A stretch of DNA of 64,000 nucleotides from Mobula hypostoma. Taxonomy: Eukaryota. The stretch's first letter is position 1, and each line of letters starts with the position of its first letter. Where the stretch lies: positions 121,334,001-121,398,000 of the forward strand of contig NC_086104.1 of assembly GCF_963921235.1 (NCBI RefSeq), read 5' to 3'. Both the position numbers and the translations under genes were made by a program. The notes under the pieces are model-generated. The model saw only the letters and a list, made by a program, of their open reading frames with translations. It did no database searches and had not been told where the DNA came from. Shown here one piece after another: positions 33,287 through 63,156 of this stretch.

Positions 33287-33441
33287 TCAGAGTCCGCACT
33301 TTACGGAACGACCGCCAGGGGGCGCTTGGTGCGCTGGTTCGCTGTTGCTCTTTGGGAGCCCGTACACGGTGGTCAGGAATAGGAGTGCGAGCGTCTTCAG
33401 GACGAGCAGGATGTAAAAAGGCAGTGGCTCCCGAGGAGAAC
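33287..33441 (-). CDS. Gene A terminal exon: TM with intramembrane Lys + short tail (GSPREPLPFYILLVLKTLALLFLTTVYGLPKSNSEPAHQAPPGGRSVKCGL*)
   Basis: Acceptor tactctcag|GT, phase 1, 240-nt intron from V1; open frame conserved in the duplicate at 48932-49086. Confidence 0.88.
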
Positions 33442-33681
33442 CTGAGAGTAAGTCGGAGTTCAGAGTGAGACGGTTTACCGAGGTGAGCTAGGGATGGGTT
33501 GTATTCTGAGGGTTCAGGGGTTTATATATTGAATAACATTGTTGCGAGTGGGTTACAGGGTGGGATGTAATCCAAGCGTTCTGGGTGAGGGGGTTATATA
33601 TGAAATAAGAGAACTGGACCTGCGATCCAGTCCCAGGAGGAATCAGGGAAGTGGCGGTGAAAGGTGATACCGGCGACTCAC

Positions 33682-34041
33682 CTCGTACCAGGACCACGGT
33701 CCCGTTCCCTCGGAGCAGCAGCTGCCGGTCGGGAAGATGAACGGACGCCAGGCAGCGGTAGGTGTTGGAGTGGCTCGGACGGAGGTGCCGGAGTTGGAGG
33801 GAGAGTCCCGTGCCGATCTCACTCTCAGGGAGAGCATCTTGCCGCCGGGATCCCTCGGGGGGCGGATAGACGACACGTTCCTCTCCCTCCTCCTCTGTCC
33901 CGCCGACCACCCAATAGTGGTAGATGATCACCCGGGACTCCGTCAGCCCCAGAACTTCGCAGTGCAGCGTCACGTTGGAACCACTCGGGACCTCCAACCT
34001 CCGAGGCCACTGGGACACGGAGAGGGTGGCGAGCGAGATGT
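33682..34041 (-). CDS. Gene A exon V1: VJ-type Ig V domain, NKp30/NCR3-like
   Basis: 360 nt, tgttacag|AC ... CGAG|gtgagt (phase 1-1). LSVSQWP...VTLHC...YW...LSLQLRHLRPSHSNTYRC...RGNGTVVLV; 68 residues between the Cys pair. Confidence 0.92.
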
Positions 34042-35286
34042 CTGTAACACAGTGAGGGAGGGAGAACGGTGAGCGAGCGTCTGTAACACATGGAGAGAGA
34101 GAAAGAGAGCGAGAGAGTAGTGAGGGAGCGTCTGTAACACAGAAAGGGAGGGAGTGGTGTGAGGGAGCGTCTGTAACACAAGGAGGGAGAGAGTAGTGAG
34201 GGAGGGTCTGAAACACAGGGAGGGAGAGAGTCTGTACAGAGAAAGAGGATGGGAGGGGCAGAGATTGAACGTGGAGTGATATCAAACTGTAAGGAAAGAG
34301 TTAAACATGATTCGTCCTTGGTAAGTGCTAAAATAAAAAGGAAGTCTGCCAGACAACATGGTGTTAACCCGGAGTGGAACTGATTTGAGAAAGTGGAAGG
34401 AGTACAAGTCTCCAGCCGAGAGAGTAGAACATGATTAATACAAGTTTGAGCGGGGAAGGCGAGGCCTTTGTTCAGGTACCAAATAGTCACCCATCAGGGA
34501 GAGTTCTGGGATAAGAGTTATGTTGGAGTTTTAAAGGGATATTGAAGGATGTTAATACGGGTAAATCTTTGTGCAAGTGGGGAGAATTTTCCATCAGAGC
34601 ACGTTAGGACCAGTGATAACGGTAAGAGTTGGGGAAGATAGACACAGTTACGTCCAGAGAGAGAGAGAGTTTTCCATCCGGCATTTGCAGATCAGCTCGT
34701 TCAGTGGACGGGAAGTGTTTGTTTTTCGCTACATCATTAACCCTTCTTTTTCCTTTTTGCATTGCATGGTTACATAGTTCTAATAAAACAATTTATTGTA
34801 GTTTAACACGTGTACAGTTGTCCCCTTTGTTTGCAAACACAGACCCGAGTGCTTATTGCTAACTCAGGAAAGAACACAACGAATTTTTAAACAATTATCG
34901 TTACGCAAGCACAACCCGAAATCGGGCAAACTCTGCCTAACACCCCCATTTTCCCCATGTCCCTCCTCCCATTCATCCCGTTTCCATGACATTTCCCTCT
35001 CGTCCTCAGGCGTTCCCTGCTCCCTCTCTCCCAACCCAAGTCCCATTTCCACATCCCACTCACAACTCCACTATTCCCCACTCGCACAATTTGTACACAG
35101 ACACACACACAATTAGATACACTAATATACTCCCCAAGATCGGGTTACAGATGGAATCTTCTCTAGTGCTTCGACGGAAATGTATCTATGGAAAAACTGC
35201 ACCGAATACGGGATCAGCTCCCAGGAATGATGCGGGAATCTGGGGGCAGCTTGCGGGGAACGAGGGCAGTGGGACCGGAGACTCAC

Positions 35287-35646
35287 CTCGTACCAGGAGC
35301 ACGGTCCCGTTCCCTCGGAGCAGCAGCCGCCGGTCGGGAAGGTGAACGGACGCCAGGCAATGGTAGGTGTTGGAGTGGCTCGGTCGGAGATGCCGGAGTT
35401 GGAGGGAGAGTCCCGTGGCGATCTCACTCTCAGGTAGGGCGGCTTCCTGCCGGGATTCCTCTGGGGCTGGGTAGACGACACGTTCCTCTTCTCCCTCCTC
35501 CGTCCCGCCGATCACCCAATAGGGGTAGATTATTACCCGGGGCTCCGTCAGCCCCAGAACCTCGCAGTGCAGCGTCACATTGGAGCCACTCGGGACCTCC
35601 AACCTCCGAGGCCACTGGGACACGTAGAGGGTGGCGAGGGAGCTGT
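35287..35646 (-). CDS. Gene A exon V2: VJ-type Ig V domain
   Basis: 360 nt, phase 1-1, open frame, same canonical sites. Confidence 0.92.
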
Positions 35647-36280
35647 CTGTAACACAGTGAGAGAGAATAGTGAGGGAGCGTCCGTAACACATAGAGGGAA
35701 GGAGAGGGAGCGGTAGATGAGAGAGTTCATGTAACACAGTGAGGGAGGGGGATGGCGAGTCTGTAATACCTGGAGAGAGAGTAGTTAGGGAGCGTCTGTA
35801 ATACAAGGAAGGAGGGAGTGGAGTGAGGGAGCGTCTGTAACACAGGGAGGGAGAGAGTAATGAGGGGGCGTCTGTAACACAGAGAGGGAGTAGTGAAGGA
35901 CCGTCTGTACACAGGAAGAGGACGGGAGGGGCAAAGATTAAATGTGGAGTGATAGCAAATTGTAAGGAAAGAGTTAAACATGATTCGTCTTTGGTATGTG
36001 CTAAAATAAAAAGGAAGTCTGCCAGACAACATGGTGTTAACCCGGAGTGGAACTGATTTGAGGAAGTTGAATGAGTACAAGTCTCCAACCTGGAGAGTAG
36101 ATCATGATAAATACAAGTTTGTGTCGGGAAGGCGAGGCCTTTGTCCAGGTACCAAACAGTGATCTATCAGGGAGAGTTCTGGGGTATGAGTTATGTCAGA
36201 GTTTTAAAGGGATATTGTAAGGGTGTAGGTACGGGTAAATCTTTGTTTAAGTGGAGAGAATTTTCCATCAGACCACGTTA

Positions 36281-39200
36281 AACTAGATTTGCAGGTGGAG
36301 GGGAACCAGAGTGTTAGAGCAGATAGTGAGGTGGAGGAGGATAAAGGTCATGTGAGAACAGCAAGTATAGTGCATGGAGTAAAGCCAGTCTAACATATAA
36401 ACATGCTTTGAGGAAAGAGAAACAGAATCAAGGGTGTAAAGGTAGTAAGGTAGAAGGGCTAAAGTGCGTGTACTGCAATGCAAGAAGCATCAGGAACAAA
36501 GGTGATGAACTGAGAGCTTGGAAACATGCATGGAATTTTGATGTCGTGGCCATTACAGAGACTTGGATGGCACCAGGGCAGGAATGGATACACAATATTC
36601 CTGGATTTCAGTGCTTTCAAAGAGATAGAGAGGGGGGAAAAGGGGAGGAGGGGTGGCATTATTGGTCAGGGATACTATTACAACTACAGAAAGGGTGGGC
36701 AATGTCGCAGAATCCTCTTTTGAGTCAGTATGGGTGGAAGTCAGGAACAGGAAGGGAGCAGTTACTCTATTGGGAGTATTCTATAGGCCCCCTGGTAGCA
36801 GCAGAGATACCGAGGAGCAGATTGGGAAGCAGATTTTGGAAAGGTGCAAAAATAACAGGGTTGTTATCATGGGTGACTTTAATTTCCCTAATATTGATTG
36901 GCACCTGATTAGTTCCATTGGTTTAGACGAGGCAGAGTTTGTTCAGTGTGTCCAGGACAGATTCCTGTCACAGTATGTTGACAGGCCGACTGGCGGGGGA
37001 TGCCATACTAGATCTAGTATTAGGTAAAGAACCGGGTCAGATCACAGATCTCTCAGCGGGTGAGCATATGGGGGACAATGACCATCACTCCCTGGTCTTT
37101 AACATTATCATGGAAAAGGATAGAATCTGAGCGGACAAGAAAATCTATAATTGGCGAAGGGCAAATTATGAGGCTATAAGGCTAGAACTTGCGGGTGTGA
37201 GTTGGGATGATGTTTTTGCAGGGAAATGTACTATGGACATGTGGTCGATGTTTAGGGATCTCTTGCAGGATGTTAGGGATAAATTTGTCCCGGTGAGGAA
37301 GATAAAGAATGGTAGGATGAAGGAACCAATGGTGACAAGTGAGGTGGAAAATCTAGTCAGGTGGAAGAAGGTAGCATACATGAGATTTAGGAAGCAAGGA
37401 TCAGATGGGTCTATTGAGGAATATAGGGTAGCAAGAAAGGAGCTTAAGAAGGGGCTGAGCAGAGCAAGAAGGGGGCATGAGAAGCCCTTGGCGAGCAGGG
37501 TAAAGGAAAACCCCAAGGCATTCTTCAGTAATGTGAAGAACAAAAGGATGACAGGAGTGAAAATAGGACTGATTAGAGATAAAGGTGGGAAGATGTGCCT
37601 GGAGGCTGTGGAAATGAGCGAGGTCCTCAATGAATACTTCTCTTCGATATTCACCAATGAGAGGGAACTTGATGATGGTGAGGACAATATGAGTGAGGTT
37701 GATGTTCTGGAGCATGTTGATATTAAGGGAGAGGAGCTGTTGGAGTTGTTAAAATACATTAGGATGGATAAGTCCCCAGGGCCTGACGTAATATTCCCCA
37801 GGCTGCTCCACGAGGCGAGTGAAGAGATTGCTGAGCCTCTGGCTAGGATCCTTATGTCCTCATTGTCCACGGGAATGGTACCGGAGGATTGGAGGGAAGC
37901 GAATGTTGTCCCCTTGTTTAAAATTAAGGTAATTGGGATAGTCTGGGTAATTATAGACCAGTGAGCCTTACGTCTGTGGTGGGAAAGCTGTTGGAAAAGA
38001 TTCTTAGAGATAGGATCTATGGGCATTTAGAGAATCATGGTCTGATCAGGGACTGTCATCATGGATTTGTGAAGGGAAGATCATGTCTAACAAACCCGAT
38101 GGAGTCCTTTGAGGAGGTGACCAGGCATATAGATGAGGGTAGTGCAGTGGATGTGATCTATATGGATTTTAGTAAGGTATTTGACAAGGTTCCACACGAT
38201 AGGCTTATTCAGAAAGTCAGAAGGCATGGGATCCAGGGAAGTTTGGCCAGGTGGATTCAGAATTGGCTTGCCTGCAGAAAGCAGAGGGTCGTGGTGGAGG
38301 GAGTACATTCGGATTGGAGATTTGTGACTAGTGGTGTCCCACAAGGATCTGTTCTGGGACCTCTACTTTTCGTGATTTTTATTAACGACCTGGTTGTGGA
38401 GGTAGAAGGGTGGGTTGGCAAGTTTGCAGACAACAAAAAGGTTGGTAGTGTTGTAGATAGTGTAGAGGTTTCTCGAAGATTGCGGAGAGACATTGATAGG
38501 ATGCAGAAGTGGGCTGAGAAGTGGCAGATGGAGTTCAACCCGGAGAAGTGCGAGGTGGTACACTTTGGAAGTACAAACTCCGAGGCAGAAAACAAAGTAA
38601 ATGGCAGGATACTTGGAAGTGTGGAGGAGCAGAGGGATCGGGGGGTACATGTCCAAAGATCCCTGAAAGTTGCCTCACAGGTAGATAGGGTAGTTAAGAA
38701 CGCGTATGGGGTGTTAGCTTTCATAAGTCGAGGGATAGAGTTTAAGAGTCACGATGTAATGATGCAGCTCTATAAAACTCTGGTTAGGCCATATTTGGAG
38801 TACTGTGTCCAGTTCTGGTCACCTTACTATAGGAAGGATGTGGAAGCATTGGAAAGGTTACAGAGGAGATTTACCAGGATGCTGCCTGGTTTAGAAAGTA
38901 TGCATTATGATCAGAGATTAAGGGAGATAGGGCTTTACTGTCTAGAGAGAAGGAGGATGAGAGGAGACATGATAGAGGTATACAAGATATTAAGAGGAAT
39001 AGATAGAGTGGACAGTCAGCGCATTCTCCCCAGGGAACCACTGCTCAATACAAGAGGACATGGCTTTAAGGTAAGGGGTGGGAAGTTCAAGGGGTATATT
39101 AGAGGAAGGTTTTTTACTCAGAGAGTGGTTGGTGCGTGGAATGCACTGCCTGAGTCAGTGGTGGAGGCAGATACACTAGTGAACTTTAAGAGACTGCCAG

Positions 39201-39321
39201 ACAGGTACATGGAGGAATTTAAGGTGGGGAGTTATATGGGAGGCAGGCTTTAAGGGTCGGCACAACATTGTGGGCCGAAGGGCCTGTACTGTGCTGTACT
39301 GTTCTATGTTCTATGTTCTGT
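36281..39321 (+). mobile_element. CR1 LINE (5'-truncated, ORF2 with frameshifts) inserted in intron 1 of gene A
   Basis: ORFs 36408-39253; tail (ttctatg)n; splits the intron motif accacgtta^cgaccag, with gtta on both sides. Confidence 0.95.
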
Positions 39322-39675
39322 GTTACGACCAGTGATAATGAGAAGAGTTGGGGAAGATAGAGCTAAGTGTGGTGAGGTAGCGTCTGTATTTCCGGTGAGG
39401 GAGCGGAGCGGGGCAGAGAGTGACCCGGATGCAGCGTCCAAAACAGCTCAAAGTCAGGCAGCTTCTGCTCAATATCAACCAGCACTTCTCCCCACGATCC
39501 ATGACCTTTCCCGAATCCATGACATTCCCCTGTCAACAACACACACCCCTTCTCCTTCTCCACTACATTGACAGCGTAACTCTTTCACCCCCAAACGACG
39601 GAAATTCTTCCCAACACTCCGACCCTTCATGCATACTGTCACTCTATGGGGAGCTGGCCCCACAGACACAGACTC

Positions 39676-39810
39676 NNNNNNNNNNNNNNNNNNNNNNNNN
39701 NNNNNNNNNNNNNNNNNNNNNNNNNNNNNNNNNNNNNNNNNNNNNNNNNNNNNNNNNNNNNNNNNNNNNNNNNNNNNNNNNNNNNNNNNNNNNNNNNNNN
39801 NNNNNNNNNN
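39676..39810. other. Assembly gap (135 N) inside intron 1 of gene A
   Basis: Run of N beginning 8 nt into the intron after the leader exon. Confidence 1.
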
Positions 39811-39818
39811 GTTCTTAC

Positions 39819-39864
39819 CCAACAGAAGGAGGAGCAAGATCAGTTTTCGAAGCTGCGCCCTCAT
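39819..39864 (-). CDS. Gene A leader (signal peptide) exon MRAQLRKLILLLLLL-G
   Basis: 46 nt from ATG to G|gtaaga, phase 1; joins the V exons in frame to give ...LLLLLLDSSLA/TLYVSQWP. Confidence 0.85.
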
Positions 39865-40697: not shown

Positions 40698-40729
<32 letters not shown>

Positions 40730-44329: not shown

Positions 44330-45615
44330 CTGGTTCTTTTGCACTTTCTCAAAACACTGCAAGCTAACACCAACCTTCCACTCTATTTTAGCGAAAGGAA
44401 GGGAGAATCACATTTAACTTTTTTCTTTTCCATATTATGAATTGAACTAAAATCACTTCCATAACTTAGTAAAGTATTTAAATGAGAACTGTCAACCCCC
44501 AAAGCTTGTAGTGCAGATGTGTTCAACTATTTCATAATGTTGACAACACCTACACACCCCAGAGTGATGTTTTGCAACAAGATATGAGGAATAATGAAGC
44601 ATGGTAGAGTATGCCCAATTCTAAGTCGAGTCAATATAATTATTTCCCTTCTTGTCTTACCTCCTTCTCCCGTCAGTCCTACAGTTTCATGTATTCTATA
44701 AAGGTGTCTCTCCTGATTCCCATTATCCCACAAGTCTTATCATCATCCCCTGTCTTACCCCCACCAACCCCTTAGCTTCCGATTTGCTTCATGGACGGAC
44801 TATATCCACAGATGAACTTTTAACAGCTCCTTTGGTCAAACAATCAACTCACTCATCCCCCTCAACACCTCTATGTGCAGGAACCCATAAGAAGAGACAT
44901 GTAGATCAATACTTTAAAGGTGAAATAAAGTTTGAAGAGCTTCCAGCAGTAAATCTGACCTACTGCTAAAATAAACTGCTTTAAAACGAGCCTAAACAGA
45001 AAAAGAATCTTAAATAATTATAAATTTGTAAGGACAGATTTCTTCCACTCACTGTAAGCCTAGAACGATGGCAACCAGTTCTGCAGTATACACTGATATA
45101 TAGTTAGTAAGGCATTTCTTCATTGTTACCTGTAATTTAGGCACAAACACAGCACACGGTTATTTCCCGTTATATTATCTTTTGATCCATCAGTAAAAAT
45201 GGTTAACATATCACAATAATTCTCTCTAAAATACTGATGAACCCACAGACTCTCGGGCATTTCAGGAACTTCGGATTTCATTAAAACATTCAACCTATAA
45301 TCAACTAACGCCATTGGGGAAAAACCATGATGGGGTTACCGAAAAACATACAGTGGGACAAATTACATAATACAACAAACCCATATTCCTAGCCTGATGA
45401 GAACGCAGCCAACGGAAACTGAAAACTCTCTTCTTGTGATGTTCCCAACAGCCTTCCAGCAAACTTTTAACAGGGTGATCATTCCTCTGCCCCCTTAAGT
45501 TAGCCCAGTATGTCAACAACAACTTCATCCTCCACAACTGCAAGGGTAATTGTCCCATTTCAACCAGTAAAGCTGAAACTGGAGTTGACCTGACTGCAGC
45601 AAACTCAATTCTTAG
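44330..45615 (-). mobile_element. Nimb/I-clade LINE 3' remnant with RNase H
   Basis: LTIFTDGSKD, LTRLRIGHT, AVRSTPVSALLVEMGQLPL; same family as 30450-32030. Confidence 0.8.
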
Positions 45616-45619
45616 AGAA

Positions 45620-47400
45620 TGTGCAAAAAGCATTCTTAAAGAATGTGAGTGGGAACGGCAGTGGGTGTGGAGGCAGATCGGATGTCTCTGATCATGTGCA
45701 CAGCATTTTGAAGTGGGAGGGTGATCAGCCAGATGTCATGGTACACATCGGTACCAATGACATAGCAAGAAAGAGTGAGGAGGTCCTGGAGAGTGAGTAT
45801 AGAGAGCTTGGTAGGAAGTTGAAAAGCAGGACCTCGAGGGTGGTAATCTCAGGATTGCTACCTGTGCCACCTGCCAGTGAGGGCAAGAATGGGATGCCTC
45901 TGGCAGATGAACACGTGGATGAGGAACTGGTGTAGGTGGCAGGGTTTCAGATTTCAGGATCATTGGGACCTCTTCTGGGGCAGGTGGGACCTGTACAAGA
46001 GAGACGGGTTACACCTGAACTACAAGGGGACCAATATCCATGCAGGGAGGTTTGACAGTGCTGTTGGGGAGGGTTTAAACTAGATTTGCAGGGGGATGGG
46101 AACCAGGGTGCCAGAGCAGATAGTGAAGTGGGGATGAAAGTAAATGATGTTAAAGGTTCATGCAATGTCACAAATTGAAGGGTTGTGTGTGGTTGTAATA
46201 ATCTTCTGAGGTGTATCTATTTCAATGCAAGGAGTATTGTGGGGAAGGCTGACGAACTGAGGGCGTGGACTGACACATGGAATTACGACATTATAGCCAT
46301 TAGTGAAACTTGGCTGCAGGAGGGGCAGCACTGGCAGCTTAATGTTCCAGGGTTCCGATGTTTCAGACGTGATAGGGGAAGAGGAATGATGTGTGGGGGG
46401 TTTGGCATTGCTAGTCAAGGAAAATGTTACTGATCCTGATCCCGGGATCTTTATCTGAGGGTATTCTGAGGTGGGATGATGCTATTCTCCAGGCTGGCAA
46501 TTTAGACACAGTCAGCCAAACACAATAGGCCCCCTTTATTCCCACTCTTTCCTTCCTGCCAGGTATCCATTCTTCTATCCATGCAAGTATCCTTCCAGTG
46601 ATATCATGGGCCCTTAACTTGTTAAACTGTCTCATGTGCAGAACCTTGTCAAAGGGCTTCTGAAAGTCCAAATAAACAATATGAATTGGCACCTCTTTAC
46701 CTATCCTGCCAGTTATCACCTCAAGGAATTCCAATGGATTTGTAGGCAAGATTTCCTCTGATGGAAGTAATGCAGGTTTTGGCCTATTTAGTCTTGTGGT
46801 TTCAAGTACCCTGAAGCTCCTCCTTAGTAATGGACTCCAACATCTTCCCAACTACTAAAGCAGGTTAAACGGCCCATACTTTCCTTCTGCCTCTCTCCCT
46901 TCTTAAGTAGTGGAGTGACATCTATATTTTTCCAGTCCGGAGGATGCATTCCAGATTGTAGTGATTCTTGAAATCCTCCACAGTCCCTTCAGCAACCTCG
47001 TTCAGAATCCTGGAGTGCTGGTAGTCCATCTGGGTCCAGGTGACCTTTCTACTATCAGACCCGTCAGTTCCCCAAACACCTTCTCCCTAGTAATGGCAAC
47101 TTCACTCACTTCTGCCCCCTGACACTCTCGCATTTCTGGCATTCTGTTATTGTCTTCCACAGTGAAGACTGATGGAAAATACTAATTAATCCATCCACCA
47201 TATCTTTGTCCCCATTACTAACTCTCCAGTGACATTTTCCAACGGTCTGATATTAACTCCCGCCTCTCGCATATCAGGAGAAACATTTTGTACCCTCTTG
47301 CATATTATTGGTTAGTTTGCCTTCATATTTCATCTTCCCCAGCCCCCATGATTTTTTAGTTTTGCTGCCTTCTGTTGGTTTTTATAACTTCCCAATTATC
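45620..47400. mobile_element. CR1 fragments (plus 45620-46430: ORF1 esterase/ORF2 start; minus 46431-47400)
   Basis: VMVHIGTNDI...VVISGLLPVP; LRCIYFNARSIVGKADEL. Confidence 0.87.
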
Positions 47401-48006
47401 TAATTTTTCACTAATTTTTCCTCTAATAAATGCCCTCTTCTCAGCTATGGTTCCCTCGTCCTCGCTTTAGAAAACTTTTTCATCTTTGGGACTCGGTATT
47501 CATATGCATAATGTCGCAAAGCACTCTGGTACAATTTAGGTTCCATTTTGTTATGACAAGTAAAGTATATTTCTGGATCGCCTCCTTTTTGTCATTTCAT
47601 GACAACACTACATTTCACCAAACAGATGCAGTTTCAAAGTCCAACCCCAAAATTCTCTTTTCATCCATCCACCTCAATGAGTGCCCATTCCTTTCCTTGA
47701 TATCCTGTCCCTCATCCTGTTATTTCGGTTGGTGTGTGTGCGAGACAGATGATCGGTGTGTGAGGAGCTCGCCGGCAACTTCACTTCTCAGGGAATGAAC
47801 CAGCCGCTGTCAATCACAGATGTATAGCCAATCAGATGGATGGATCAGACAGACGGTGCAAAAAAACCCAATGCAATGACTGACGGGAGGTGTTTGCGGC
47901 GGCAGGGTCTGCACTGAATGATGTGGAGAGGTGAGAAGTCGTGTTTCTTTGTTCATCCCGAGCAGCTGCGTGACAGAGGACTCTCTCATCTCCGGGCTGT
48001 TCGCAG

Positions 48007-48146
48007 GGACACACAAGGAGACAGACATCAAGTGCAGCTGGCAGATCATCAACTCGGTGAAAGGCACCTTTGGTCAGCCCGACCTCATTGGTCATCGAGA
48101 TGTCCGTGGATGGGAGCTGCCGAATGGCGACAAGACACCGTGCTGA
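48007..48146 (+). pseudogene. Orphan terminal-exon-like remnant, copy B (xTHKETDIKCSWQIINSVKGTFGQPDLIGHRDVRGWELPNGDKTPC*)
   Basis: Acceptor gttcgcag|, AATAAA at 48395-48400. Confidence 0.4.
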
Positions 48147-48931
48147 GGGAGGCGCTGAAGCCGGGTTCAGGCACCGCAGGGCTCGGTGCTGAAGCGCCAC
48201 AGTGTAATGTTCCTTCACTACTGGAGAGGGAGGGGCCGGGTTGGGTAAGGAAGCCCCTTAATTACTGTAGTAGTGTACATGATTGACAACGATCCTATTG
48301 GTGTTAAGGAATGTAATCAAACACTAATGAAAGCATTCACTATGAATTTAAGAACGAAAGGCCGCTTGTTCTTGTTTTCTTTAAAAAAATTATTAATAAA
48401 GATATTTTTCAACTACGAAAACATTGCCACACTATTGGGAATTCTTCTAAGCCTACACCTCTCTCCACAAATCCATCGGGCAGTGGTCTGCGCGGCACTT
48501 CCTGCAGACACTGCGGCACAGCGGCCGTGGGGTGAATAGCTGAGCAAACGGCAGAACGCCGCATCGCCAGATCTCAGTAACACACGGTCACCACCTCTTC
48601 GCAGACCGCGGATTCGCTCGGGCGGTGTGGAGACGGATGCAAGGGTCCGTGTACCGGTTCATCCCCATCAGCTGTGAAAAGAAGCATTCTCTGAGAAACA
48701 GACTATTTCCCAGGTCACACACAGACGGGCATCAAGTTCTACTAGAAGATCATCGGCTCAATGAAGGACGTCCTTTGGTCTGTCGGAAATTTGTTGGTCT
48801 CTCCTGACAGTGAGATGTCGGTGGGAGAAAGCTGGTTACTGGCACAGTCCAGGCTGCAAGAGGAGGTACTTCAGGAAGTGTCCTGGGTCCGCCAGCAGTG
48901 ATGGGGCTTTTTCTCCGCTGTCCCTGTCGCC

Positions 48932-49086
48932 TCAGAGTCCGCACTTTACGGAACGACCGCCAGGGGGCGCTCGGTGCGCTGGTTCGCTGTTGCTCTTTGG
49001 GAGCCGGTACACGGTGGTCAGGACTAGGAGAGCGAGCGCCTTCAGGACGAGCAGGATGTAAAAAGGCAGTGGCTCCCGAGGAGAAC
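48932..49086 (-). CDS. Gene B terminal exon: TM with Lys + short tail (GSPREPLPFYILLVLKALALLVLTTVYRLPKSNSEPAHRAPPGGRSVKCGL*)
   Basis: Same acceptor and frame as gene A; ORF 48932-49123. Confidence 0.88.
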
Positions 49087-49325: not shown

Positions 49326-49693
49326 CTCGTACCAGGAGCATGGTCCCGTTCCCTCGGAGCAGCAGCTGGCGGTCGGGAAGGTGAACGGACGCCAGGCAGC
49401 GGTAGGTGTTGGAGTGGCTCGGTCGGAGGTGCCGGAGTTGGAGGGAGAGTCCCGTGCCGATCTCACTCTCAGGGAGAACATTTTGCTGCTGGGATCCCTC
49501 GGGGGGGGGGGGGGCGGATAGACGACACGCTCCTCTCCCTCCTCCTCTGTACCGCCGACCACCCAATAGGGGTAGTTTATCACCCGGGGCTCCGTCAGCC
49601 CCAGAACTTCGCAGTGCAACGTCACGTTGGAGCCACTCGGGACCTCCAACCTCCGAGGCCACTGGAACACGGAGAGGGTGGCGAGCGAGATGT
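49326..49693 (-). pseudogene. Gene B exon V3: V domain frameshifted by an 8-nt homopolymer expansion
   Basis: 368 nt; G14 at 49501-49514 versus G6 in V1; splice sites intact; both halves otherwise open. Confidence 0.85.
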
Positions 49694-51006
49694 CTGTAAC
49701 ATTGTAAGGAAGAATCGTGAGGGAGCATCCGTAACATATAGAGGGAAGGAGAGAGAGAGAGAGAGAGAGAAGTGGATGAGTGAGTTTCTTTATCACAGTG
49801 AGGGAGGGAGAATGGCGAGTAATCGTCTGTAAGACCTGGAGACTGTTGTGAGGGAGGGTCTGTAATGCAAGGAGGTAGAAAGTGTAGTGAGGGAGTGTCT
49901 GTAACATAGGGAGGGAGGGAGAAAATAGTGAAGGACCGTCTGTACACAGGAAAGAGGAATGGAGGGGCAGACATTAAACGTGGAGTGATATCAAACTGTA
50001 AGGAAAGAGTTAAACATGATTCGTCCTTGGTATGTGCGAAACAAAAAGTAAGTCTGCCAGACAACATGGTGTTAACCCGGAGTGGAACTGATTTGAGAAA
50101 GTTGAATGAGTACAAGTTTCCAGTCTGGAGAGTAGATCATGATGAATACAAGTTTGTGTCAGGAAGGCGAGGCCTTTGGCCAGGTACCAAACAGTGACCC
50201 AGCAGGGAGAGTTCTGGGGTATGAGTTATGTTAGAGTTTTAAAACGATACTGAAGGGTGTAGGTACGGGTAAATCTTTCTGCAAGAGGGGACAATTTTCC
50301 ATCAGACCACGTTACGACCAGTGATAACGGTAAGAGTTGGGGACGATAGAGACAAGTACGTTGAGAGAGAGAGAGAGATGTAAGTTTGTGGGATCTGCGA
50401 TGTCTTCCGGAATCTGCAAATCAGCCCGTTCAGTGTGTTTATTGCGACATCATTAACCCTTGGTTTTCTTTTTTGCATTGCATGGTTATATAATTCTAAT
50501 GCTGTAAAATAATTTATTGTAGATTAACACGTGTACAGTTGTCTCCTTCGTTTGCAAATACAGACCCGAATGTCTATTGCTGTAACAGGAATGAATACGG
50601 AACGAATTTTTAGACAATTATCGTAGCGCAAACACAGCCCCAAATCGGGCAAACTCTGCCTAACACTCCCATTTTCCCCATGTCCCTCCTGCCATTCATC
50701 CCGTATCCATGACATTTCCGTCTCGTCCTCAGGCGTTCCCTGCTCCCTCTCTCCCAACCCAAGTCCCAGTTCCACATCCCACCCACGACTCCCCTATTCT
50801 CCACTCGCACAATTTGTACAGTTACACACACAAATAGATACACTGATATACTCCCCAAGATCGGGTTAAAGATGGAATCTTCCCCAGCGCTTCGACGGAA
50901 AAGTATCTATGGAAAAACTGCACCGAATATGGGATATTGTCCCAGGAGTGATGCGGAATCCGCGGGTAGCTAGTGGGGAACGAGGGCAGTGGGACCGGAG
51001 ACTCAC

Positions 51007-51366
51007 CTCGTACCAGGAGCACGGTCCCGTTCCCTCGGAGCAGCAGCCGCCGGTCGGTAAGATGAACGGACGCCAGGCAGCGGTAGGTGTTGGAGTGGCT
51101 CGGGCGGAGGTGCCGGAGTTGGAGGGAGAGTCCCGTGCCGATCTCACACTCAGGGAGAGCATCTTGCTGCCGGGATCCCTCGGGGGGCGGGTAGAGGACA
51201 CGTTCCTCTCCCTCGTCCTCTGTCCCGCCCACCACCCAATAGGGGTCAATTATGACCCGGGGCTCCGTCAGCCCCAGAACTTCGCAGTGCAGCGTCACGT
51301 TGGAGCCACTCGGGACCTCCAACCTCCGAGGCCACTGGGACACGTAGAGGGTGACGAGGGAGCCGT
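51007..51366 (-). CDS. Gene B exon V4: VJ-type Ig V domain
   Basis: 360 nt, phase 1-1, open; extra Cys (LPECEIG). Confidence 0.9.
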
Positions 51367-52589
51367 CTGTAACACAGTGAGAGAGGGAGAAAAGTGAGCG
51401 AGCGTCTGTAACACATGGAGAGAAGTGGAGAGAGAGTAGTGAGGGAGCGTCTGCAACACAGAGAGTGAGGAAGTGGAAGGAGGGAGCGTCTGTTACACAA
51501 GGAGGGAGAGAGTAGTGAGGGAGCGTCTGCACACAGGAAGCGGATGGGAGGGGTAGAGGATAAACGTGGAGAGATAAATAACCATGATTTGTTCTTGATA
51601 TGTGCCAAAATAAAATGCAATGCTGCCAGACAACATGGTGTTAACCCGGGGTAGAACTGATTTGAGGAAGTTGAATGAGTACAAGTCTCCAGCCTGGAGA
51701 GTAGATCGTGATGAATACAAGTTTGTGTCGGGAAGGCGAGGCCATTGTCCAGGTACCAAATACAGGTAGTGAAAATTAAGGAGAGTTCTGGGATAAGAGT
51801 AATGTTAGAGTTTTAAAGGGATATTGAAGGGTGTAGATACGGGTAAATCTTTGTGCAAGTGGGGACAATTTTCCATCAGACCACGTTACGACCAGGGAAA
51901 ATGATAAAAGATGGGGAAGATAGAGATAAGGACGTCGAGTGAGAGAGAGATGAAAGAGTGTGGTATCTGCGAATCCTTCTGGCATCTGCAAATCAGCTCG
52001 TTCAGTGGACGGGATGTGTTTGTTTTTCGCGACATCATTAACCCTTCGTTTGGCTTTTTGCATTGCATGTTTATATAACCCTAATAAAACAATTTATTGT
52101 AGTTTAACACGTGCACAATTGTCACCTTTGTTTGCAAATACAGACCTGATTACCTATTGCTGTATCAGGAATGAGCAAGGAACGAATTCTTAAACAATTA
52201 TCGTCGCGCAAACGCAGCCCCAAATCGGGCAAACTCTGCCTAACACTCCTATTTTCCCCATGTCCCTCCTCCCATTCATCCCATATCCATGACATTTCCC
52301 TCTCGTCCTCAGGCGTTCCCTGCTCCCTCTCTCCCAATCCAAGTCCCAGTTCCACATCCCACTCTCAACTCCACTATTCTCCACTCGCACAATTTGTAAA
52401 GAGTTACACACAAAACTAGATACACTGATATACTCCCCAAGATCGGGTTAAAGATGGAATCTTCCCCAGCGCTTCGACGGAAAAGTATCTATGGAAAAAC
52501 TGCACCGAATATGGGATCCGATTGCAGGAATGATGCGGGAATCTGGGGACAGCTGGTGGGGAACGAGGGCAGTGGGACCGGAGACTCAC

Positions 52590-52949
52590 CCCGTACCAGG
52601 AGCACGGTTCCGTTCCCTCGGAGCAGCAGCGGCCGGTCGGGAAGGCGAACGGACGCCAGACAGCGGTATGTGTTGGAGTGGCTCGGGCGGAGGTGCCGGA
52701 GTTGGAGGGAGAGTCCCGTGTCGATCTCACTCTCAGGGAGAGCATCTTGCTGCTGGGATCCCTCTGGGAGCGGGTAAACGACACGTTCCTCCTCTCCCTC
52801 CCCCTTCTCACCGACCACCCAAAAGGGGTAGATTTTCACCCGGGGATCGGTCAGTCCCAGAACCTCGCAGTGCAGCGTCACGTTGGAACCACTCGGGACC
52901 TCCACCCTCTGAGGCCACTGGGTCACGTAGAGGGTGGCGAGCGAGATGT
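52590..52949 (-). CDS. Gene B exon V5: VJ-type Ig V domain
   Basis: 360 nt, phase 1-1, open. Confidence 0.9.
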
Positions 52950-54172
52950 CTGTAACATAGTAAGGGAGGGAGAATGGTGAAGGAGCGTCCGTAACATATA
53001 GAGGGAAGGAGAGAGAGAGAGAGGTGGATGAGAGAGTTTCTTTAACATTGAGAGAGGGAGAATGGCGAGAAATCGTCTGTAACACATGGAGGCAGTTGTG
53101 AGGGAGGGTCTGTAATACAGGGAGGGAGGCAGAACGTAGTGAAGGACCGTCTGTACACAGGAAAGAGGAATGGAGGGGCAGAGATTAAACGTGGAGTGAT
53201 ATCAAACTGTAAGGAAAGAGTTAAACATGATTCGTCCTTGGTATGTGCTAAACAAAAAGCAAGTCTGCCAGACAACATGGTGTTAACCCGGAGTGGAACT
53301 GATTTGAGGAAGTTGAATGAGTACAAGTCTCCAGCCTGGAGAGTAGATCTTGATGAATACAAGTTTGTGTCGGGAAGGCGAGGCCTTTGGCCAGGTACCA
53401 AACAGTGACCCAGCAGGGAGAGTTCTGGGGTATGAGTTATGTTAGAGTTTTAAAACGATACTGAAGGGTGTAGGTACGGGTAAATCTTTGTGCAAGTGGG
53501 GACAATTTTCCATCAGACCACTTTAGGACCAGTGATAATGGTAAGAGTTGGGGAAGAGAGCGCTTTCCATCCGGCATTTGCAGATCAGCTCGTTCAGTGG
53601 ACGGGATGTGTTTGTTTTTCGCGATATCATTAACCCTTCGTTTTCCTTTTTGAATTGCATGGTTATATAATTCTAATAAAGCAACTTATTGCGGTTTAAC
53701 ACGTGCACGCTTGTCCCCTTTGTTTGTAAATACAGAGCCGAATGCTTACTCATGAATCAAGAAAGAACACGGAAGGATTTTTTAAACGATTATCGTTACG
53801 CAAACACAGCCCCAAATCGGGCAAATTCTGCCTAACACTCCCATTTTCCCCATGTCACTCCTCCCATTCACCTCGCATCCATGACATTTTCCTCTCGTCC
53901 TCAGGCGTTCCCTGCTCCCTCTCTCCCAATCCAAGTCCCAGTTCCACATCCCACTCTCAACTCCACTCGCACAATTTGTACAGAGTTACACACACAAATA
54001 GATACACTGATATACTCCCCAAGATCGGGTTACAGATGGAATCTTCCCCAGCGCTTCGACGGAGATGTATCTATGGAAAAACTGCACCGAATATGGGATC
54101 CGACTGCAGGAATGATGCTGGATTCTGGGGACAGCTGGTGGGGAAACGAGGGCAGTGGAACCGGAGACTCAC

Positions 54173-54532
54173 CTCGTACCAGGAGCACGGTCCCGTTCCC
54201 TCGGAACAGCAGCTCCCCGTCGGGAAGGCGAACGGACGCCAGACAGCGGTATGTGTTGGAGTGGCTCGGGCGGAGGTGCCGGAGTTGGAGGGAGAGTCCC
54301 GTGCCGATCTCACTCTCAGGGAGAGCATCTTGCTGCTGGGATCCCTCTGGGATCGGGTAAACGACACGTTCCTCCTCTCCCTCCCCCTTCTCACCGACCA
54401 CCCAAAAGGGGTAGATTTTCACCCGGAGATCGGTCAGCCCCAGAACCTCGCAGTGCAGCGTCACGTTGGAACCACTAGGGACCTCTAACCTCCGAGGCCA
54501 CTGGGACACGTAGAGGGTGGCGAGGGAGCTGT
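54173..54532 (-). CDS. Gene B exon V6: VJ-type Ig V domain
   Basis: 360 nt, phase 1-1, open. Confidence 0.9.
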
Positions 54533-55581
54533 CTGTAACATAGTGAGGGAGGGAGAATGGTGAGGGAGCGTTTGTAACACATGGAGATAGGGAGAGAGTA
54601 GCGAGTGTAGAGGTTGGGAGGGGCAGAGAGTAAACGTGGAGTGATATCAAACTGTAAGGAAAGAGTTAAACATGATTCGTCCTTGGTATGTGCTAAATAA
54701 AAAGGAAGTCTGCCAGACAACATGGTATTAACCCGGAGTGGAACTGATTTGAGGAAGTTGAATGAGTACAAGTCTCCAGCCTGGAGAGTAGATCGTGATG
54801 ATTACAAGTTTGTGTCGGGAAGGCGAGGCTTTTGTCCAGGTACCAAATACAGGTAGTGAAAATCAAGGAGTGTTCTGGGATAAGAGTAATGTTAGAGCTT
54901 TAAAGGGATATTGAAGGGTGTAGATACGGGTAAATCTTTGTGCAAGTGGGGACAATTTTCCATCAGAACACGTTACGACCAGGGAAAATGATAAAAGATG
55001 GGGAAGATAGAGATGAGGACGTCGAGTGAGAGAGAGAAAGAGAGAGAGATGAAAGAGTGTGGTATCTGCGAATCCTCCTGGCATCTGCAAATCAGCTCGT
55101 TCAGTGGACGGGATGTGTTTGTTTTTCGCGACATCATTAACCCTTCGTTTGGCTTTTTGCATTGCATGTTTATATAACCCTAATAAAACAATTTATTGTA
55201 GTTTAACACAATTGTCAGCTTTGTTTGCAAATACAGACCTGATTACCTATTGCTGTATCAGGAATGAGCAAGGAACGAATTCTTAAACAATTATCGTTGC
55301 GCAAACGCAGGCCCAAATCGGGCAAACTCTGCCTAACACTCCTATTTTCCCCATGTCCCTCCTCCCATTCATCCCATATCCATGACATTTCCCTCTCGTC
55401 CTCAGGCGTTCCCTGCTCCCTCTCTCCCAACCCAAGTCCCAGTTCCACATCCCACTCTCAACTCCACTATTCTCCACTCGCACAATTTGTACAGAGTTAC
55501 ACACACAAATAGATACACTGATATACTCCCCAAGATCGGGTTAAAGATGGAATCTTCCCCAGCGCTTCGACGGAAATGTAT

Positions 55582-57779: not shown

Positions 57780-57884
57780 GTATCTATGAAAAAACTGCAC
57801 CAAATATGGGATCCGATCCCAGGAATGAGGCGGGAATCTGGGGGCAGCTAACGGGGAATGAGGACAGTGGGACCGGAGACTCAC

Positions 57885-58244
57885 CTCGTACCAGGAGCAC
57901 GGTCCCGTTCCCTCGGAGCAGCAGCTGCCGGTCGGGAAGATGAACGGATGCCAGGCAGCGGTAGGTGTTGGAGTGGCTCGGGCGGAGGTGCCGGAGTTGG
58001 AGGGAGAGTCCCGTGCCGATCTCACTCTCAGGTAGGGTGGCTTCCTGCCGGGATTCCTCTGGGGCTGGGTAGATGACACGTTCCTCCTCTCCCTCCCCCA
58101 TCCCGCTGATCACCCAATAGGGGTAGATTATCACCCGGGGCTCCGTCAGCCCCAGAACTTCACAGTGCAGCGTCACGTTGGAGCCACTCGGGACCTCCAA
58201 CCTCCGAGGCCACTGGGACACGTAGATGGTGGAGAGGGAGCTGT
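57885..58244 (-). CDS. Gene B exon V7: VJ-type Ig V domain
   Basis: 360 nt, phase 1-1, open. Confidence 0.9.
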
Positions 58245-59324
58245 CTGTAACACAGTGAGAGAGGGAGAATGATGAGGGAGCGTCTGTAACACATGGAGGG
58301 AAGGAGAGAGAGACGGATGAAGGAGTTTCTGTAACACAGTGAAGGAGAGAAAGCGGCGGGCATCAGTAACCCCTGGAGAGAGAGAGTTGTGAGGAGGATC
58401 TGTAATACAAGGAGGGAGTGAGTATAGTGAGAGAGTGTGTGTAACACATGGAATGAAGGAGAGAGAGTAGATAGGGAGCGTCTGTAATACAAGGAGGGAG
58501 GGAGTGAGTGAAGTGAGGGAGCGTCTGTAACACAGGGAGGGACGGAGAAAGTAGTGAAGGACCGTCTGTACACAGGATGAGGATGGGAGGGGGCAGAGAT
58601 TAAACGTGGAGTGATATCAAATTGTAAGAAAAGAGTTACACATTATTCGTCCATGGTGTGTGCCAAAATAAAAAGGAAGTCTGCGAGACAACATGGTGTT
58701 AACCCGGAGTGGAACTGATTTGAGGAAGTTGAATGAGTACAAGTCTCCAGCCTGGAGAGTAGATCATGATGAATGCAAGTTTGTGTCGGGAAGGTGAGGC
58801 CTTTGTCCAGGTACCAAATAGTCATCTATCAGGAAGAGTTCTGGGGTAAGAGTTATGTTCCAGTTTTAAAGGATGTTGAAGGGTGTCGATACGGGTTAAT
58901 CTTTGTGTATGTGGGGAGAATTTTCCATCAGACTACGTTACGACCAGTGATAGTGATAAGAGTTGGGTAAGATAGAGACAAGTACGTCCATTGAGAGAGA
59001 GAGATGAAAGATTGTGGGATCTGTGATCCTTCCGCCATCTGCAGATCAGCTCGTTCAGTGGAGAAGAAGTGTTTGTTTTTCGCGACATCATTAACCCTTC
59101 GTTTTCCATTTTTCATTGCATCCTTATATAACACTAATAAAAAAATTTATTGTAGTTTAACACGTGTACAGTTGTCCCCTTTGTTTGCAAATACAGACCC
59201 GAATGCTTATTTCTGAATCAGGAAAGAACACAGAACGAAATTTTAAACCATTATCGTTCCGCAAACACAGCCCAAAATCGGGCAAACTCTGCCTAACCCT
59301 CCCACTTCTCCCCATGTCCCTCCC

Positions 59325-60521
59325 CAGGATACAGACAAGGAGCAGGGACAAGAACGCAGATTTGGGCTAGGACATGGACTAGTCACAGGGAACCCGGACA
59401 AGGAACTATGAACTAGGAGCCTAGGCTTGGACTCCGAGCCAGAGACTGGACAAGGACCCAGGACCTGGGTCTTGCCTCGGGCTCGGACCCCAGAACTAGG
59501 CAAGGACATGACATGGCTACAGGACAGGACGTGGCTGGGAGTCTAGAGGCTTGAGGCTGGGGTCTTGGCTCTTGAAAACAGAGGCTGATAACTCGGAGGC
59601 TGGAGCTCGGAAACAGACTGGGAACTGTACATCAACAAAGAGCCGGGACTTATTCATCGAAAAGCTGGAACTCATCTTTAACACGACACCAACATGAGAC
59701 AGGACAGTACATGGACAGAGAGCCGGGACTTATACTTAGACAAGCTGGGACTCAACTTCTTCTCCACACCAAAGTGGGACAGGACCATCCGTCGGGTAAC
59801 GGCAGAATGGCCGGACTTACCCAACAGAGGCAAAGACATGACAAGGCACGACAGGCCCCCGCAGGGCAACGGCAGAATGGCCTGTTGTACCCCATGGAGG
59901 TGAAGACAAGACAAGACAGATCCCTCCCGCAGGGCAACGGCAGAACGGCCTGACTTATCCCACGGAGGCGAGGACAAGACAAGACAAGACAGATACCACC
60001 GCAGGGCAACAGCAGAACGGCCTGACTTACACCATGGAGGCGAGGACAAGAAGAGATAAACACCGAAGAATGAGAAACAGTTCCATCTCTGCATCGGGGT
60101 TGATCCAAGTAGCAGTTCGGCCAGAAACTTCAACTGGCTACGGAAACAGCCGGATCCCAACCTAGCTCGGAGTGGCTGGCAGCCAGTCAGCTGGCCCAGG
60201 AAACAGCCGAATCCATACCACAAGGACAGCTCCGACTACTGACAGCAAGGGTCCATGAAGCGATGGTTCTCCAACACGGCCTAAAGAGGACAAGTGGCCG
60301 CTCAAGCCTTCCACCAGCAGGTTGCTCCCAGGGGATCTTGACAAGACAAACCAGCAGCCCACAGTTGTCCCCAAGGCTACTTATATTCCAAGCCCCAAGG
60401 TGGGAATCAGGTGCCTATGATTAACTCAACCAAAACAAGGGACAGCTGGAATACCCGGAGTCCTGAATCCACAGACTGGACCGTGAACTGGAATGTGGAC
60501 TTCACGGACCGGACAATGACA
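59325..60521 (-). mobile_element. LTR-like element end with internal ~65-bp tandem repeats
   Basis: Minus strand begins TGTCA-ttgtccggtccgtgaagtcc; repeats of gcagggcaacggcagaa..ggcctgactta...gacaagac at ~59790-60050; no coding domain seen. Confidence 0.6.
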
Positions 60522-62716
60522 TAAAAGGCACTTGATTCGGTTAATTGGAACTTTCTTTACCGAGTTTTACATAGGTTTGGTCTACATGACACAATTATTA
60601 AAACTATACGACAATCCTACTACCAGGATTAAAATCAATGGATATTTATCTAATAGCTTTACCCTAGAAAGGGGCACTAGACAGGTTTGTGCATAGTCAC
60701 CGCTACTCTTCGCATTATATCTGGAACCACTAGCTCAATACATCAGACAAAATGAAGATATCAGGGGAATTACTATTAAAGGGACAGAGCGTAAATTGGC
60801 CTGTTATGCCGATGACATTTTGATCTATCTAGGGCAACCAACATACTCTTTACCTAAATTGATGCAATCCTTTGAACAATATGGGCAATTATCAGGATAC
60901 AAGATCAACATAGATAAAACCCAACTACTTTCATATAACTATAGCTCACCAAGAGAAATTGAAAGTAGATATCCTTGGGCATGGGAAACAGGGTCCGTCA
61001 AATATTTGGGCACCATTATGCCAAAAGATTCGGCAAAATTATCAGAATGCAATTATCAGCCTATACATAAAAATTAAGGAAGATATAACAAGATGGAACC
61101 TAATTCCTTTTCGTGGTCTCAGTTTAAGGATTGAATCTATTGAAATGAATATACTGCCCAGACTATTATATCTCTTTCAGACCCTAACAATAGAGATTAA
61201 CCAAGATCAGTTCAATGAATGGAACAAGATGCTATCAAGATATATATGGCAAGGTAAAAGGCCTAGGGTTCGTCTCAAAACTTCGCAATTAGCCAAGGAA
61301 AAGGGGGGTGGGTCCTACCTTCTCTTAGAGATTATTATTTTGCAGCAGAGTTGAGAGCTGTGATAAGCTGGTGAAACCCATCATATGACGCTCAATGGAA
61401 AAACATTGAGGAGAGGATACTTTCCTTCCCCATACAGGCAATTTTGGTTCATAATAGCCTACAAAGTTACATAAATAATAATGACAACCTGATGCTGAAA
61501 TGGACTCTTAAAATATGGAAAACTATTATAAAAGAATATAAACTAGAGAGAGAGGTTGCAATTCTTAAATGGTGTGCATATGACTCGGATTTTACGCCGA
61601 ATAAACTGGTGCTAGATTTAAGGACTGGACAGCTGAAGGAATAACAGCTATTTGCAATATAATGAAAGAAGGAACACTGTTCAGATTTGAAATGCTCAAA
61701 GAGAAACACTTATTAGAAAAACAAGACTTTTACCGGTATTTACAGATCCGACAATACGTTAATAGGACGGTTAAAAATGTAACCAAGGCAAGTACATGTC
61801 TGACAGAGCTATTTAGAAAAGCATATAATTCAGACAACGGTAGTAGAATAATTTCAAGTGTGTATAAGGGTTTGTTAAATTTTAAAACACATTCAATTTC
61901 ATACATTAATACAAAATGGGAGAAGGAAGGAGGGATAATAATATCTGAGGAAGACTGGGCAATAATATGGAGGTATCAATGGAAGTGTACCAGTTCACAG
62001 AAATGGAGGGAGTTCAGGTGGAAAAACTTGATAAGATATTTTATTACACCCTCTCAGAAATCCCATTATGATAATAACCCCCCTGTTTGCTGGAGAAATT
62101 GTAGAAATCAAAATGCAAACAATTATCATATTTTCAGGGAATGCCCCGTTATAAAAGACTATTGGATTTGGATACATAATGCCCTACAAGACAGCTTTAA
62201 ATGTGAAATACCCTTAGAGAGTAAGACCATATATTTTGGGTATATACCTCAAGAATGGTTGAAAAGAGATTAATATTTAATGAATAGACTGCTGGTGGCT
62301 GGTAAAAAGACCCTTACCAGGAAATGGTTATCACAGGAGAGCCCAACTTTAAATGTATGTATGGAAATTACAATGGACATTTACAAAATGGAGAAGATAA
62401 CAGCATCGGTTCATCATAAATTGGAACAATTTTATTCATACTGGAAAAAACGGTTTAACTACGTAACACCTGATTTTATTCTCACAAGTCAATGAATATG
62501 TTGTAAAAAAAAGATCACTCCCTAATCTGTACATAGTTTTCTCCTTTCGATTGTTCTTTCTTTCCTCTCCTTTTTTATAAGTGTATACCTCAGATAAATA
62601 TTATGTGGAGATTTGTGACAAATATGGTATCATATATATGTACATTATCTGAAATACATCTTATGGAATTGTTTGTTTGATGATGAAATTCAATAAAAAT
62701 AAATTACCAAAAAAAA
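60522..62716 (+). mobile_element. L1/Tx1-clade LINE 3' half
   Basis: ACYADDILIYLG, NILPRLLYLFQ, CWRNC...ANNYHIFREC; aataaa and A tail at 62690-62716. Confidence 0.9.
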
Positions 62717-62796
62717 CGCTGAACAAGAAATGGAATCGGAAAGCGGGAACTGGGGGCAGCTAGTGGGGAAAGAGGGCAGTGGGATCGGAGACTCAC

Positions 62797-63156
62797 CTCG
62801 TACCAGGAGCACGGTCCCGTTCCCTCGGAGCAGCAGCCGCCGGTCGGGAAGGTGAACGGACGCCAGGCAGCGGTAGGTGTTAGAGTGGCTCGGGCGGAGG
62901 TGCCGGACTTGGAGGGAGAGTCCCGTGCCGATCTCACTCTCAGGTAGGGCGTCTTCCCGCTGGGTTTCCTGTGGGGGCGGGTAGACGACACGTTCTTCTT
63001 CCCCCTCCTCCGTCCCGCCGATCACCCAATAAGGGTAGATTATCACCCGGGGCTCCGTCAGCCCCAGAACTTCGCAGTGCAGCGTCACGTTGGAGCCACT
63101 CGGGACCTCCAACCTCCGAGGCCACTGGGACACGTAGAGGGTGGCGAGCGAGATGT
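62797..63156 (-). CDS. Gene B exon V8: VJ-type Ig V domain (5'-most in window)
   Basis: 360 nt, phase 1-1, open. Confidence 0.9.

Follow-up and report, generated by a model that had tools for sequence, protein, structure and literature searches.

How does one receptor gene come to hold a run of near-identical immunoglobulin (Ig) exons, and what protein does it make from them? The question is raised by a stretch of 64,000 nucleotides from the ray Mobula hypostoma (hereafter the window), in which an earlier note, made from the letters alone, had described eight V exons served by a single leader exon and two transmembrane (TM) exons. That note had offered two readings: multi-domain receptors of variable length, or a choice among V exons in the manner of Dscam and the clustered protocadherins. 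We concluded that the window probably contains, in tandem, two paralogous genes from a family of type I membrane receptors of the ray lineage, gene A (LOC134350233) and gene B (LOC134350234), in which V domains are spliced serially and their number is set by unequal crossing-over between repeated units.

The V exon and the domain it encodes

The coding strand of the array, which the earlier note had not given, is the minus strand. A repeat unit was found in eight copies with start-to-start spacings of 1605, 1583, 1583, 1681, 3712 and 4912 nucleotides (nt), each containing one V exon (8/8 on the minus strand). Positions below are those of the window, and the higher number of each pair is the first base of the V exon. 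Gene B contains V1 (62797–63156), V2 (57885–58244), V3 (54173–54532), V4 (52590–52949), V5 (51007–51366) and V6 (49326–49693); gene A contains V7 (35287–35646) as its first V exon and V8 (33682–34041) as its second and last. The acceptor of all eight is a pyrimidine-rich ...tgttacag^AC and the donor is ...CG(A/G)G^GTGAGT, where ^ marks the splice junction. Seven of the eight exons (V1–V5, V7 and V8) are exactly 360 nt long, open, and in phase 1 at both ends, so that adding or removing one leaves the reading frame unchanged. The claim that all eight were phase-1 exons with these splice sites stood for the copy number and the splice sites, and fell only for V6, which is 368 nt long and not symmetric. 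In V6 a run of 14 C (near 49500) replaces the 6 C of the other copies (5 C in V7), making the exon 8 nt longer. As assembled, its second half and the TM exon that follows are out of frame, and both halves are otherwise open and conserved. The C run is either a recent slippage mutation or a miscall of the run length.

Pairwise identity between V exons was 88–95%, the highest value being shared by V3 and V4. This divergence, together with the differing transposon insertions between copies, indicates diverged paralogous units rather than assembly duplicates. No further Ig exon was found in the window besides the eight V exons, and a search of the window for RNA genes gave no Rfam match.

Translation of the V exons gave D-[I/S/G]-S-L-[A/S/V]-T-L-Y-V-S-Q-W-P ... 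C ... W ... Y-R-C ... R-G-N-G-T-V-L-L-V-R, so one exon takes in the strands A to G of the domain, the G strand, RGNGTV(L/V)LV, being J-like. Every V exon opens with the end of a signal peptide (D-[ISG]-S-L-[ASV]), as had been noticed earlier; in internal domains these first five residues form part of a linker of about 7 residues. The best match of the V domain in the PDB by phmmer was a T-cell receptor alpha (TCR-alpha) V domain (E 9e-5), and the top PDB sequence matches aligned it end to end with TCR-alpha V-J regions. For the single domain AlphaFold predicted a V-type sandwich (pLDDT 78, pTM 0.74), and for the gene A protein it predicted two V-type sandwiches and a TM helix (two-domain pTM 0.41). 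Each 360-nt exon encodes a complete, non-rearranging V-set domain of VJ type.

A V segment of a rearranging antigen receptor would carry a recombination signal sequence, and none was found: the whole window contained zero sites combining heptamer and nonamer (at least 7/9). A lone CACAGTG was present in the acceptor region of five V exons. With one leader and two Lys-encoding TM exons in the window, the observation that the unit has no leader, TM exon or recombination signal of its own was borne out.

We compared nonsynonymous (dN) and synonymous (dS) divergence among the seven intact exons. Mean dN was 0.075 and mean dS 0.173, a ratio of 0.43; the ratio was 0.28 in framework codons and 0.55 in three stretches resembling complementarity-determining regions (CDRs), which contained 49 of the 82 variable nucleotide columns. 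These values are moderate evidence that the V exons are under constraint.

Gene models, relatives and the number of domains

A HMMER scan with one V domain against 1.84 billion representative proteins returned one strong match, a 450-amino-acid (aa) stingray protein that matched three times, and the cluster of that protein led to RefSeq models of four ray species. The ray models examined were those of Mobula hypostoma, M. birostris, Hemitrygon akajei and Hypanus sabinus. Splicing the gene A leader to V7, V8 and the TM exon gave a 306-aa protein that was 100% identical to XP_062911311.1 (M. hypostoma LOC134350233, isoform X2), which established the proposed order leader-V-V-TM for this gene. 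The exons V1, V2, V4, V5, V6 and TM of gene B corresponded to residues 16–632 of XP_062911314.1 (LOC134350234). The proposed layout of gene B, a leader outside the window followed by six V exons and a TM exon, was recovered in the DNA; its RefSeq model departs from it, since V3 is left out despite being intact with normal splice sites, the frameshifted V6 is kept, and the TM exon is read out of frame, leaving no anchor. Without V6 the gene B product is intact and TM-anchored. Both genes stand in RefSeq as 'uncharacterized protein'.

The only true leader in the window, by a scan for ATG, a hydrophobic core and a phase-1 donor, is that of gene A (39819–39864, minus strand), which encodes MRAQLRKLILLLLLL plus G and ends in the phase-1 donor G^gtaagaac. 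The gene B leader lies 1.7 kb past the end of the window and encodes an identical peptide. We also considered a leader in every unit and rejected it, as the scan gave only weak, recurring open reading frames (ORFs) that were not signal-like (MNGRRDMGKMGVLGR...) and had poor donors.

The TM and cytoplasmic exon of gene A (33287–33441, minus strand) encodes GSPREPLPFYILLVLKTLALLFLTTVYGLPKSNSEPAHQAPPGGRSVKCGL up to the stop; the helix contains a Lys and the tail lacks any Tyr motif. That of gene B (48932–49086, minus strand) is intact in its own frame, which is lost if V6 in its assembled form is spliced before it. Both encode ...PFYILLVLK(T/A)LALL... followed by a short Tyr-free tail; in the AlphaFold model of the gene A protein the predicted helix covers residues 264–282, with Lys at 271 and no Tyr in the tail after it. 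The count of one leader and two TM exons was accurate as far as these exons go, and missed a third, TM-like exon without a charge (20236–20282, minus strand; VTVGVCVPVVVLLFLW; cag^TG ... TGG^gtaagt). Three isoforms of gene A have been modelled: X2 with the Lys-containing TM helix, X1, in which the intron after V8 is retained to give a soluble form, and X3, in which V8 is joined to the uncharged TM-like exon. This exon lies 13 kb downstream of gene A and may be a true alternative anchor or part of a further gene.

The RefSeq models, from annotation in five species, join V exons serially across the junction ...LLVR^DSSLATL..., and the number of V domains differs among paralogues and species while the exons stay tandem, symmetric and in phase 1. 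One V domain is found in the catshark protein GCB59757.1, which is 36–40% identical and has the same EPLP...LVK... Lys-containing TM segment. Two are found in both Mobula species, Hemitrygon and Hypanus, and three in Hemitrygon. Eleven are found in Hypanus sabinus XP_059813377.1, which is labelled 'hemicentin-2-like' and has an in-frame TM segment; its gene contains 11 intact 360-nt V exons spaced 1495–2009 nt apart, the same unit as in the Mobula window. A Lys-containing TM segment and a short tail are uniform among these relatives. With serial models of 2, 3, 5 (6 with V3) or 11 V domains, and a gene A product that matches exactly, the proposal of multi-domain receptors whose length varies by copy-number change was supported.

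In a tree of the domains, stingray domains grouped by lineage, several of them being identical; Mobula domains grouped by position (first versus last), and V3 and V4 formed a separate pair. Such a pattern is expected from recurrent unequal crossing-over between units accompanied by some homogenisation, and the grouping points to a recent lineage-specific expansion of V domains. Among the weak V-domain matches outside cartilaginous fish were V-C-TM proteins of coelacanth and paddlefish that carry the 'uncharacterized' label and share the J-like motif in the form (E/S)G(N/D)GT; a distant relationship to the family is possible.

We propose the following mechanism. Each gene consists of one leader exon, a run of near-identical V exons, and one exon for a short stalk, a predicted Lys-containing TM helix and a tail without motifs. 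Serial splicing would place 2 V domains (gene A) or up to 6 (gene B) in one chain, with the tail of the signal peptide retained as interdomain linkers of about 7 residues. Unequal crossing-over between exon-plus-intron units of 1.5–1.6 kb would lengthen or shorten the series, giving 1, 2, 3, 6 or 11 domains. The TM Lys may pair with the Asp of an adaptor of the DAP12 or FcR-gamma type bearing an immunoreceptor tyrosine-based activation motif (ITAM), which would make the protein an activating receptor. A chain of V domains with slightly differing loops could behave like a rod: its length and valency would determine how far it reaches and how avidly it binds a putative ligand, and unequal crossing-over would then tune the length of the rod over evolutionary time. 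Soluble and uncharged-TM isoforms may serve as decoys. Secondary variation could come from in-frame duplicated acceptors with their 13-aa linker modules, from exon skipping and intron retention, and from the alternative uncharged TM exon.

The flanks of the two genes bear on their origin. The 3′ flank of gene A (30448–33396) is duplicated at 44952–49041, the 3′ flank of gene B, with 81–97% identity. A retroelement of the long interspersed nuclear element (LINE) type with endonuclease and reverse transcriptase (RT) ORFs (36345–39250, plus strand) is inserted into the first intron of gene A in antisense orientation; a fragment copy of it (63791–63958, 96% identical) occupies the same position upstream of V1 as upstream of V7. 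Because the 3′ flanks match and the same LINE fragment stands upstream of V7 and V1, we regard genes A and B as a segmental duplication. Further LINE-type endonuclease/RT ORFs were seen at 24597–28091 (minus strand) and at 60697–62270, 5075–7378 and 63690–63998 (plus strand), and some LINE-type insertions lengthen the V1–V2 and V2–V3 introns.

A run of N (39676–39810) begins 8 nt past the leader donor in intron 1 of gene A, and, being intronic, does not put the reading frame at stake. In the matching public record its flanks are exactly 135 nt apart without N (L001:35903-36037), so they are contiguous. A second run of N (8903–9037) is also 135 nt long, and both look like masks and not like assembly gaps. 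Beyond the window, a third paralogue, LOC134350235 (OY992599.1:121440138-121443468), has 2 V domains and a leader beginning MMRAQ...; it lies about 40 kb beyond the 5′ end of gene B in the opposite orientation. No other gene calls were present within 10 kb of gene B or of LOC134350235.

Alternative readings of the array

Several points weigh against a family of serially spliced receptors that includes gene B. Serial splicing is supported by RefSeq/Gnomon models and not by reads, and among read assemblies (Logan) we found no copies of the family proteins, whose sources were solely NCBI and UniRef. The opening few hundred bases of each downstream intron are conserved at least as well as the V exons themselves, which indicates that the array is young. 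The pairing with an adaptor is putative, as are the ligand and the cell type. Gene B itself may be decaying, since its model skips V3 and has no in-frame TM segment. Carried further, this last point becomes an account in which only the 2-V genes are functional, the 6-V array is drifting towards a pseudogene, and the extra domains have no function. In favour of that account are the frameshift of V6 as assembled, the absence of a TM segment from the only RefSeq model of gene B, and the transposable elements that lengthen two of its introns; it draws further support from the equal conservation of exons and adjacent introns and from M. birostris, in which no gene B orthologue of 248–787 aa was found. 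Nevertheless, we consider it unlikely. In gene B the frames of V1–V5 and of the TM exon are open, dN/dS is below 1, the halves of V6 are otherwise intact, and a miscalled length is plausible for the 14-C homopolymer that causes the frameshift; moreover, H. sabinus retains 11 intact V exons with an in-frame TM segment. Because gene B is broken in its last V exon as assembled, an anchored protein needs either skipping of V6 or a miscalled length of the C run. A far more radical doubt, that mis-assembly multiplied one or two real V exons into the array, could appeal to the error-prone assembly of tandem repeats and to the runs of N in the window, but we give it almost no credence: artefact copies would be near-identical, whereas these units differ by 5–12% in exons and by more in introns and carry distinct transposable-element insertions, the run of N in the array is intronic with contiguous flanks, and independent assemblies of three other species have the same architecture.

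The second proposal of the earlier note was that the leader, or any V donor, joins different V acceptors in each cell or transcript. The junctions are indeed interchangeable, as the donors all end in G and the V acceptors all begin with AC to give Asp. The RefSeq model of gene B drops the intact V3, stingray isoforms vary in acceptor use, the V exons differ chiefly in their CDR-like loops, and base pairing is possible between a (GA)n tract near the start of intron 1 in gene B and (TC)n stretches preceding V4 and V6. However, leader and promoter are missing from the individual units, as the leader scan indicated, which excludes the protocadherin mode, where each variable exon has its own promoter and start. 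The only complementarity is of low-complexity dinucleotides that are common in the window. The exons are symmetric, the introns are of the GT-AG type and about 1.2 kb long, and no rule of steric hindrance, frame, splice-site type or nonsense-mediated decay would enforce exclusivity. Every model joins neighbouring V exons serially, up to 11 of them, and where Dscam includes one exon of a cluster per transcript the RefSeq models (models, not reads) carry 2–11 V domains. Exclusive cassette choice like that of Dscam or the protocadherins is therefore very unlikely, although some exon skipping is possible and is required for an anchored gene B protein as assembled. The (GA)n tract itself lies beyond the window, some 120 nt inside intron 1 of gene B (L001:10164-10217), and the (TC)n tracts lie 40–80 nt upstream of V4 (52991–53028) and V6 (49731–49771); pairing between them was indistinguishable from chance. 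A search for docking and selector pairs of the Dscam kind gave nothing specific beyond these tracts. Between intron 1 of gene A, part of which is masked, and the regions upstream of the V exons no inverted repeats were found.

A different kind of splice variation is suggested by the acceptors. Directly upstream of V8 lies a minisatellite of 37–43 nt (34042–34231, minus strand) in which the acceptor (tgtgttacag^AC) is repeated in frame at −39, −90 and −129 nt. Comparable arrays stand upstream of V7 (35620–35915), V5 (51356–51536), V3 (54518–54595) and V2 (58234–58574), all on the minus strand, so the minisatellite occurs upstream of most V exons and copies the acceptor together with the first bases of the exon. 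An in-frame tgttacag^AC was present at −39 nt for V2, V5 and V8, with others further up, and the upstream frame was open for 39–109 codons in all eight units. Models from Hemitrygon and Hypanus use homologous acceptors and thereby add a 13-aa module (DAPSPFSLPHCVT) or 28–41 aa; these extra residues fall between domains or after the leader. No Mobula model uses a duplicated acceptor. Were the use of symmetric, junction-identical V exons and of in-frame duplicated acceptors regulated, one gene would yield a repertoire of isoforms varying in V number, V identity and linker length, and rays would possess a splice-based diversification of a germline VJ receptor; we think it improbable that such regulation exists. 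The same improbable reading would let neighbouring V domains pair, a 7-residue linker being too short and a 20-residue linker sufficient for an Fv-like pair. As to intrachain Fv-like pairing of V7 and V8, the two-domain model (pTM 0.41) matched scFv and diabody chains only at TM-scores of 0.26–0.34 and root-mean-square deviations of 12–23 Å, a fit too loose to speak for or against such pairing. We retained the serially spliced, multi-domain receptor as the most probable account of the array.

Related receptors and the meaning of the array

The earlier note had called the receptor NKp30-like. As in NKp30 (NCR3), a single exon encodes a V domain that does not rearrange and has a J-like G strand, and a positively charged TM residue is followed by a short tail without ITAM or inhibitory counterpart (ITIM). 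Human NKp30 has Arg in its TM segment, where the ray family has Lys, and its G strand contains a GNGT sequon that is common to the ray V domains. The one-V catshark homologue has the leader-V-TM layout of NKp30, and it shares EF(K/R)GR and Y-x-C-x-V motifs with NKp30. A shark NCR3 family is reported by Kinlein et al. (2021). Unlike NKp30, with its one Ig domain, the ray proteins have ectodomains of 2–11 V domains, a single V being confined to the homologue from catshark. Linkage to the MHC class III region and binding of B7H6 also belong to the NKp30 profile. By phmmer, NKp30 did not appear within the best 60 matches from the PDB. In a Foldseek search with the single-domain model, V domains of antibodies, TCR-alpha, IgNAR and SIRP-alpha led the matches, and NKp30 was not in the top 50; a fold search with the two-domain model did not bring it up either. 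HMMER and profile searches returned no protein named NCR3, and profile searches to E = 10 gave only the family itself. The likeness thus held for the VJ exon, the charged TM segment and the short tail, and broke down over the multi-domain ectodomain, and the top sequence and fold matches did not back it; it is only a resemblance, a lead and not membership.

Other receptors offer parallels for the array. UrIg2 of elasmobranchs is a non-rearranging VJ-type receptor whose Ig-domain exons are tandemly duplicated, near-identical and variable in number by species (PMC12227049). There the repeated exons are of C1 type and stand behind a single VJ domain, whereas the ray genes repeat the VJ domain itself and have no C domains. 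The skate MDIR, an elasmobranch family, belongs among the Ig-superfamily receptors of variable domain number (PMC3031540). With MDIR, and with KIR, LILR, FcRL, SIRP-beta and teleost NITR, the ray genes share a type I topology, phase-1 Ig exons, a TM Lys or Arg for ITAM adaptors, shifts of domain number by duplication, loss or skipping of exons, and fast lineage-specific expansion; the skipped pseudoexon of KIR2D is a precedent for the broken V6. The domains of those receptors are C2 or I-set, V plus C, or CD300-like V, and none is a homopolymer of VJ domains. Tandem ectodomains made wholly of V-set domains, in numbers that differ between paralogues or taxa, are found in pIgR (2–5 V-like domains across vertebrates) and in the EWI family (IGSF8, PTGFRN, IGSF3, CD101), but their domains are old, mutually divergent and not of VJ type, and their TM segments and functions are different. 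Dscam and the clustered protocadherins likewise have tandem similar exons, encoding variants of an Ig-type domain (Dscam) or of a whole ectodomain (protocadherins); the former needs RNA pairing between docking and selector sequences and the latter a promoter per exon, neither of which was found in the ray genes, whose models take many exons.

A search of the literature on NKp30-like receptors or NKp30 in elasmobranchs and stingrays found nothing on the ray family. The earlier suggestion that the architecture was undescribed stands to that extent, with the qualification that the genes already stood in RefSeq under the label of uncharacterized proteins. Both the duplication of exons for Ig domains and variable domain number are well known in immune receptors such as KIR, LILR, FcRL and pIgR, and such exon-duplication accordions, being common, are not a new principle. 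The novelty here lies in the repeated unit, a VJ-type domain present in up to 11 copies on an anchor of activating type.

Non-rearranging VJ domains encoded by one exon attract study as remnants of the gene whose splitting by the RAG transposon gave rise to antibodies and T-cell receptors. In rays, a domain of this type has been multiplied up to eleven times per chain, and its copy number shifts between closely related species. The natural series of 1, 2, 3, 6 and 11 domains offers material for asking how tandem V domains affect ligand reach and avidity, and the family adds an unnamed member to the sparse list of innate immune receptors of cartilaginous fish.

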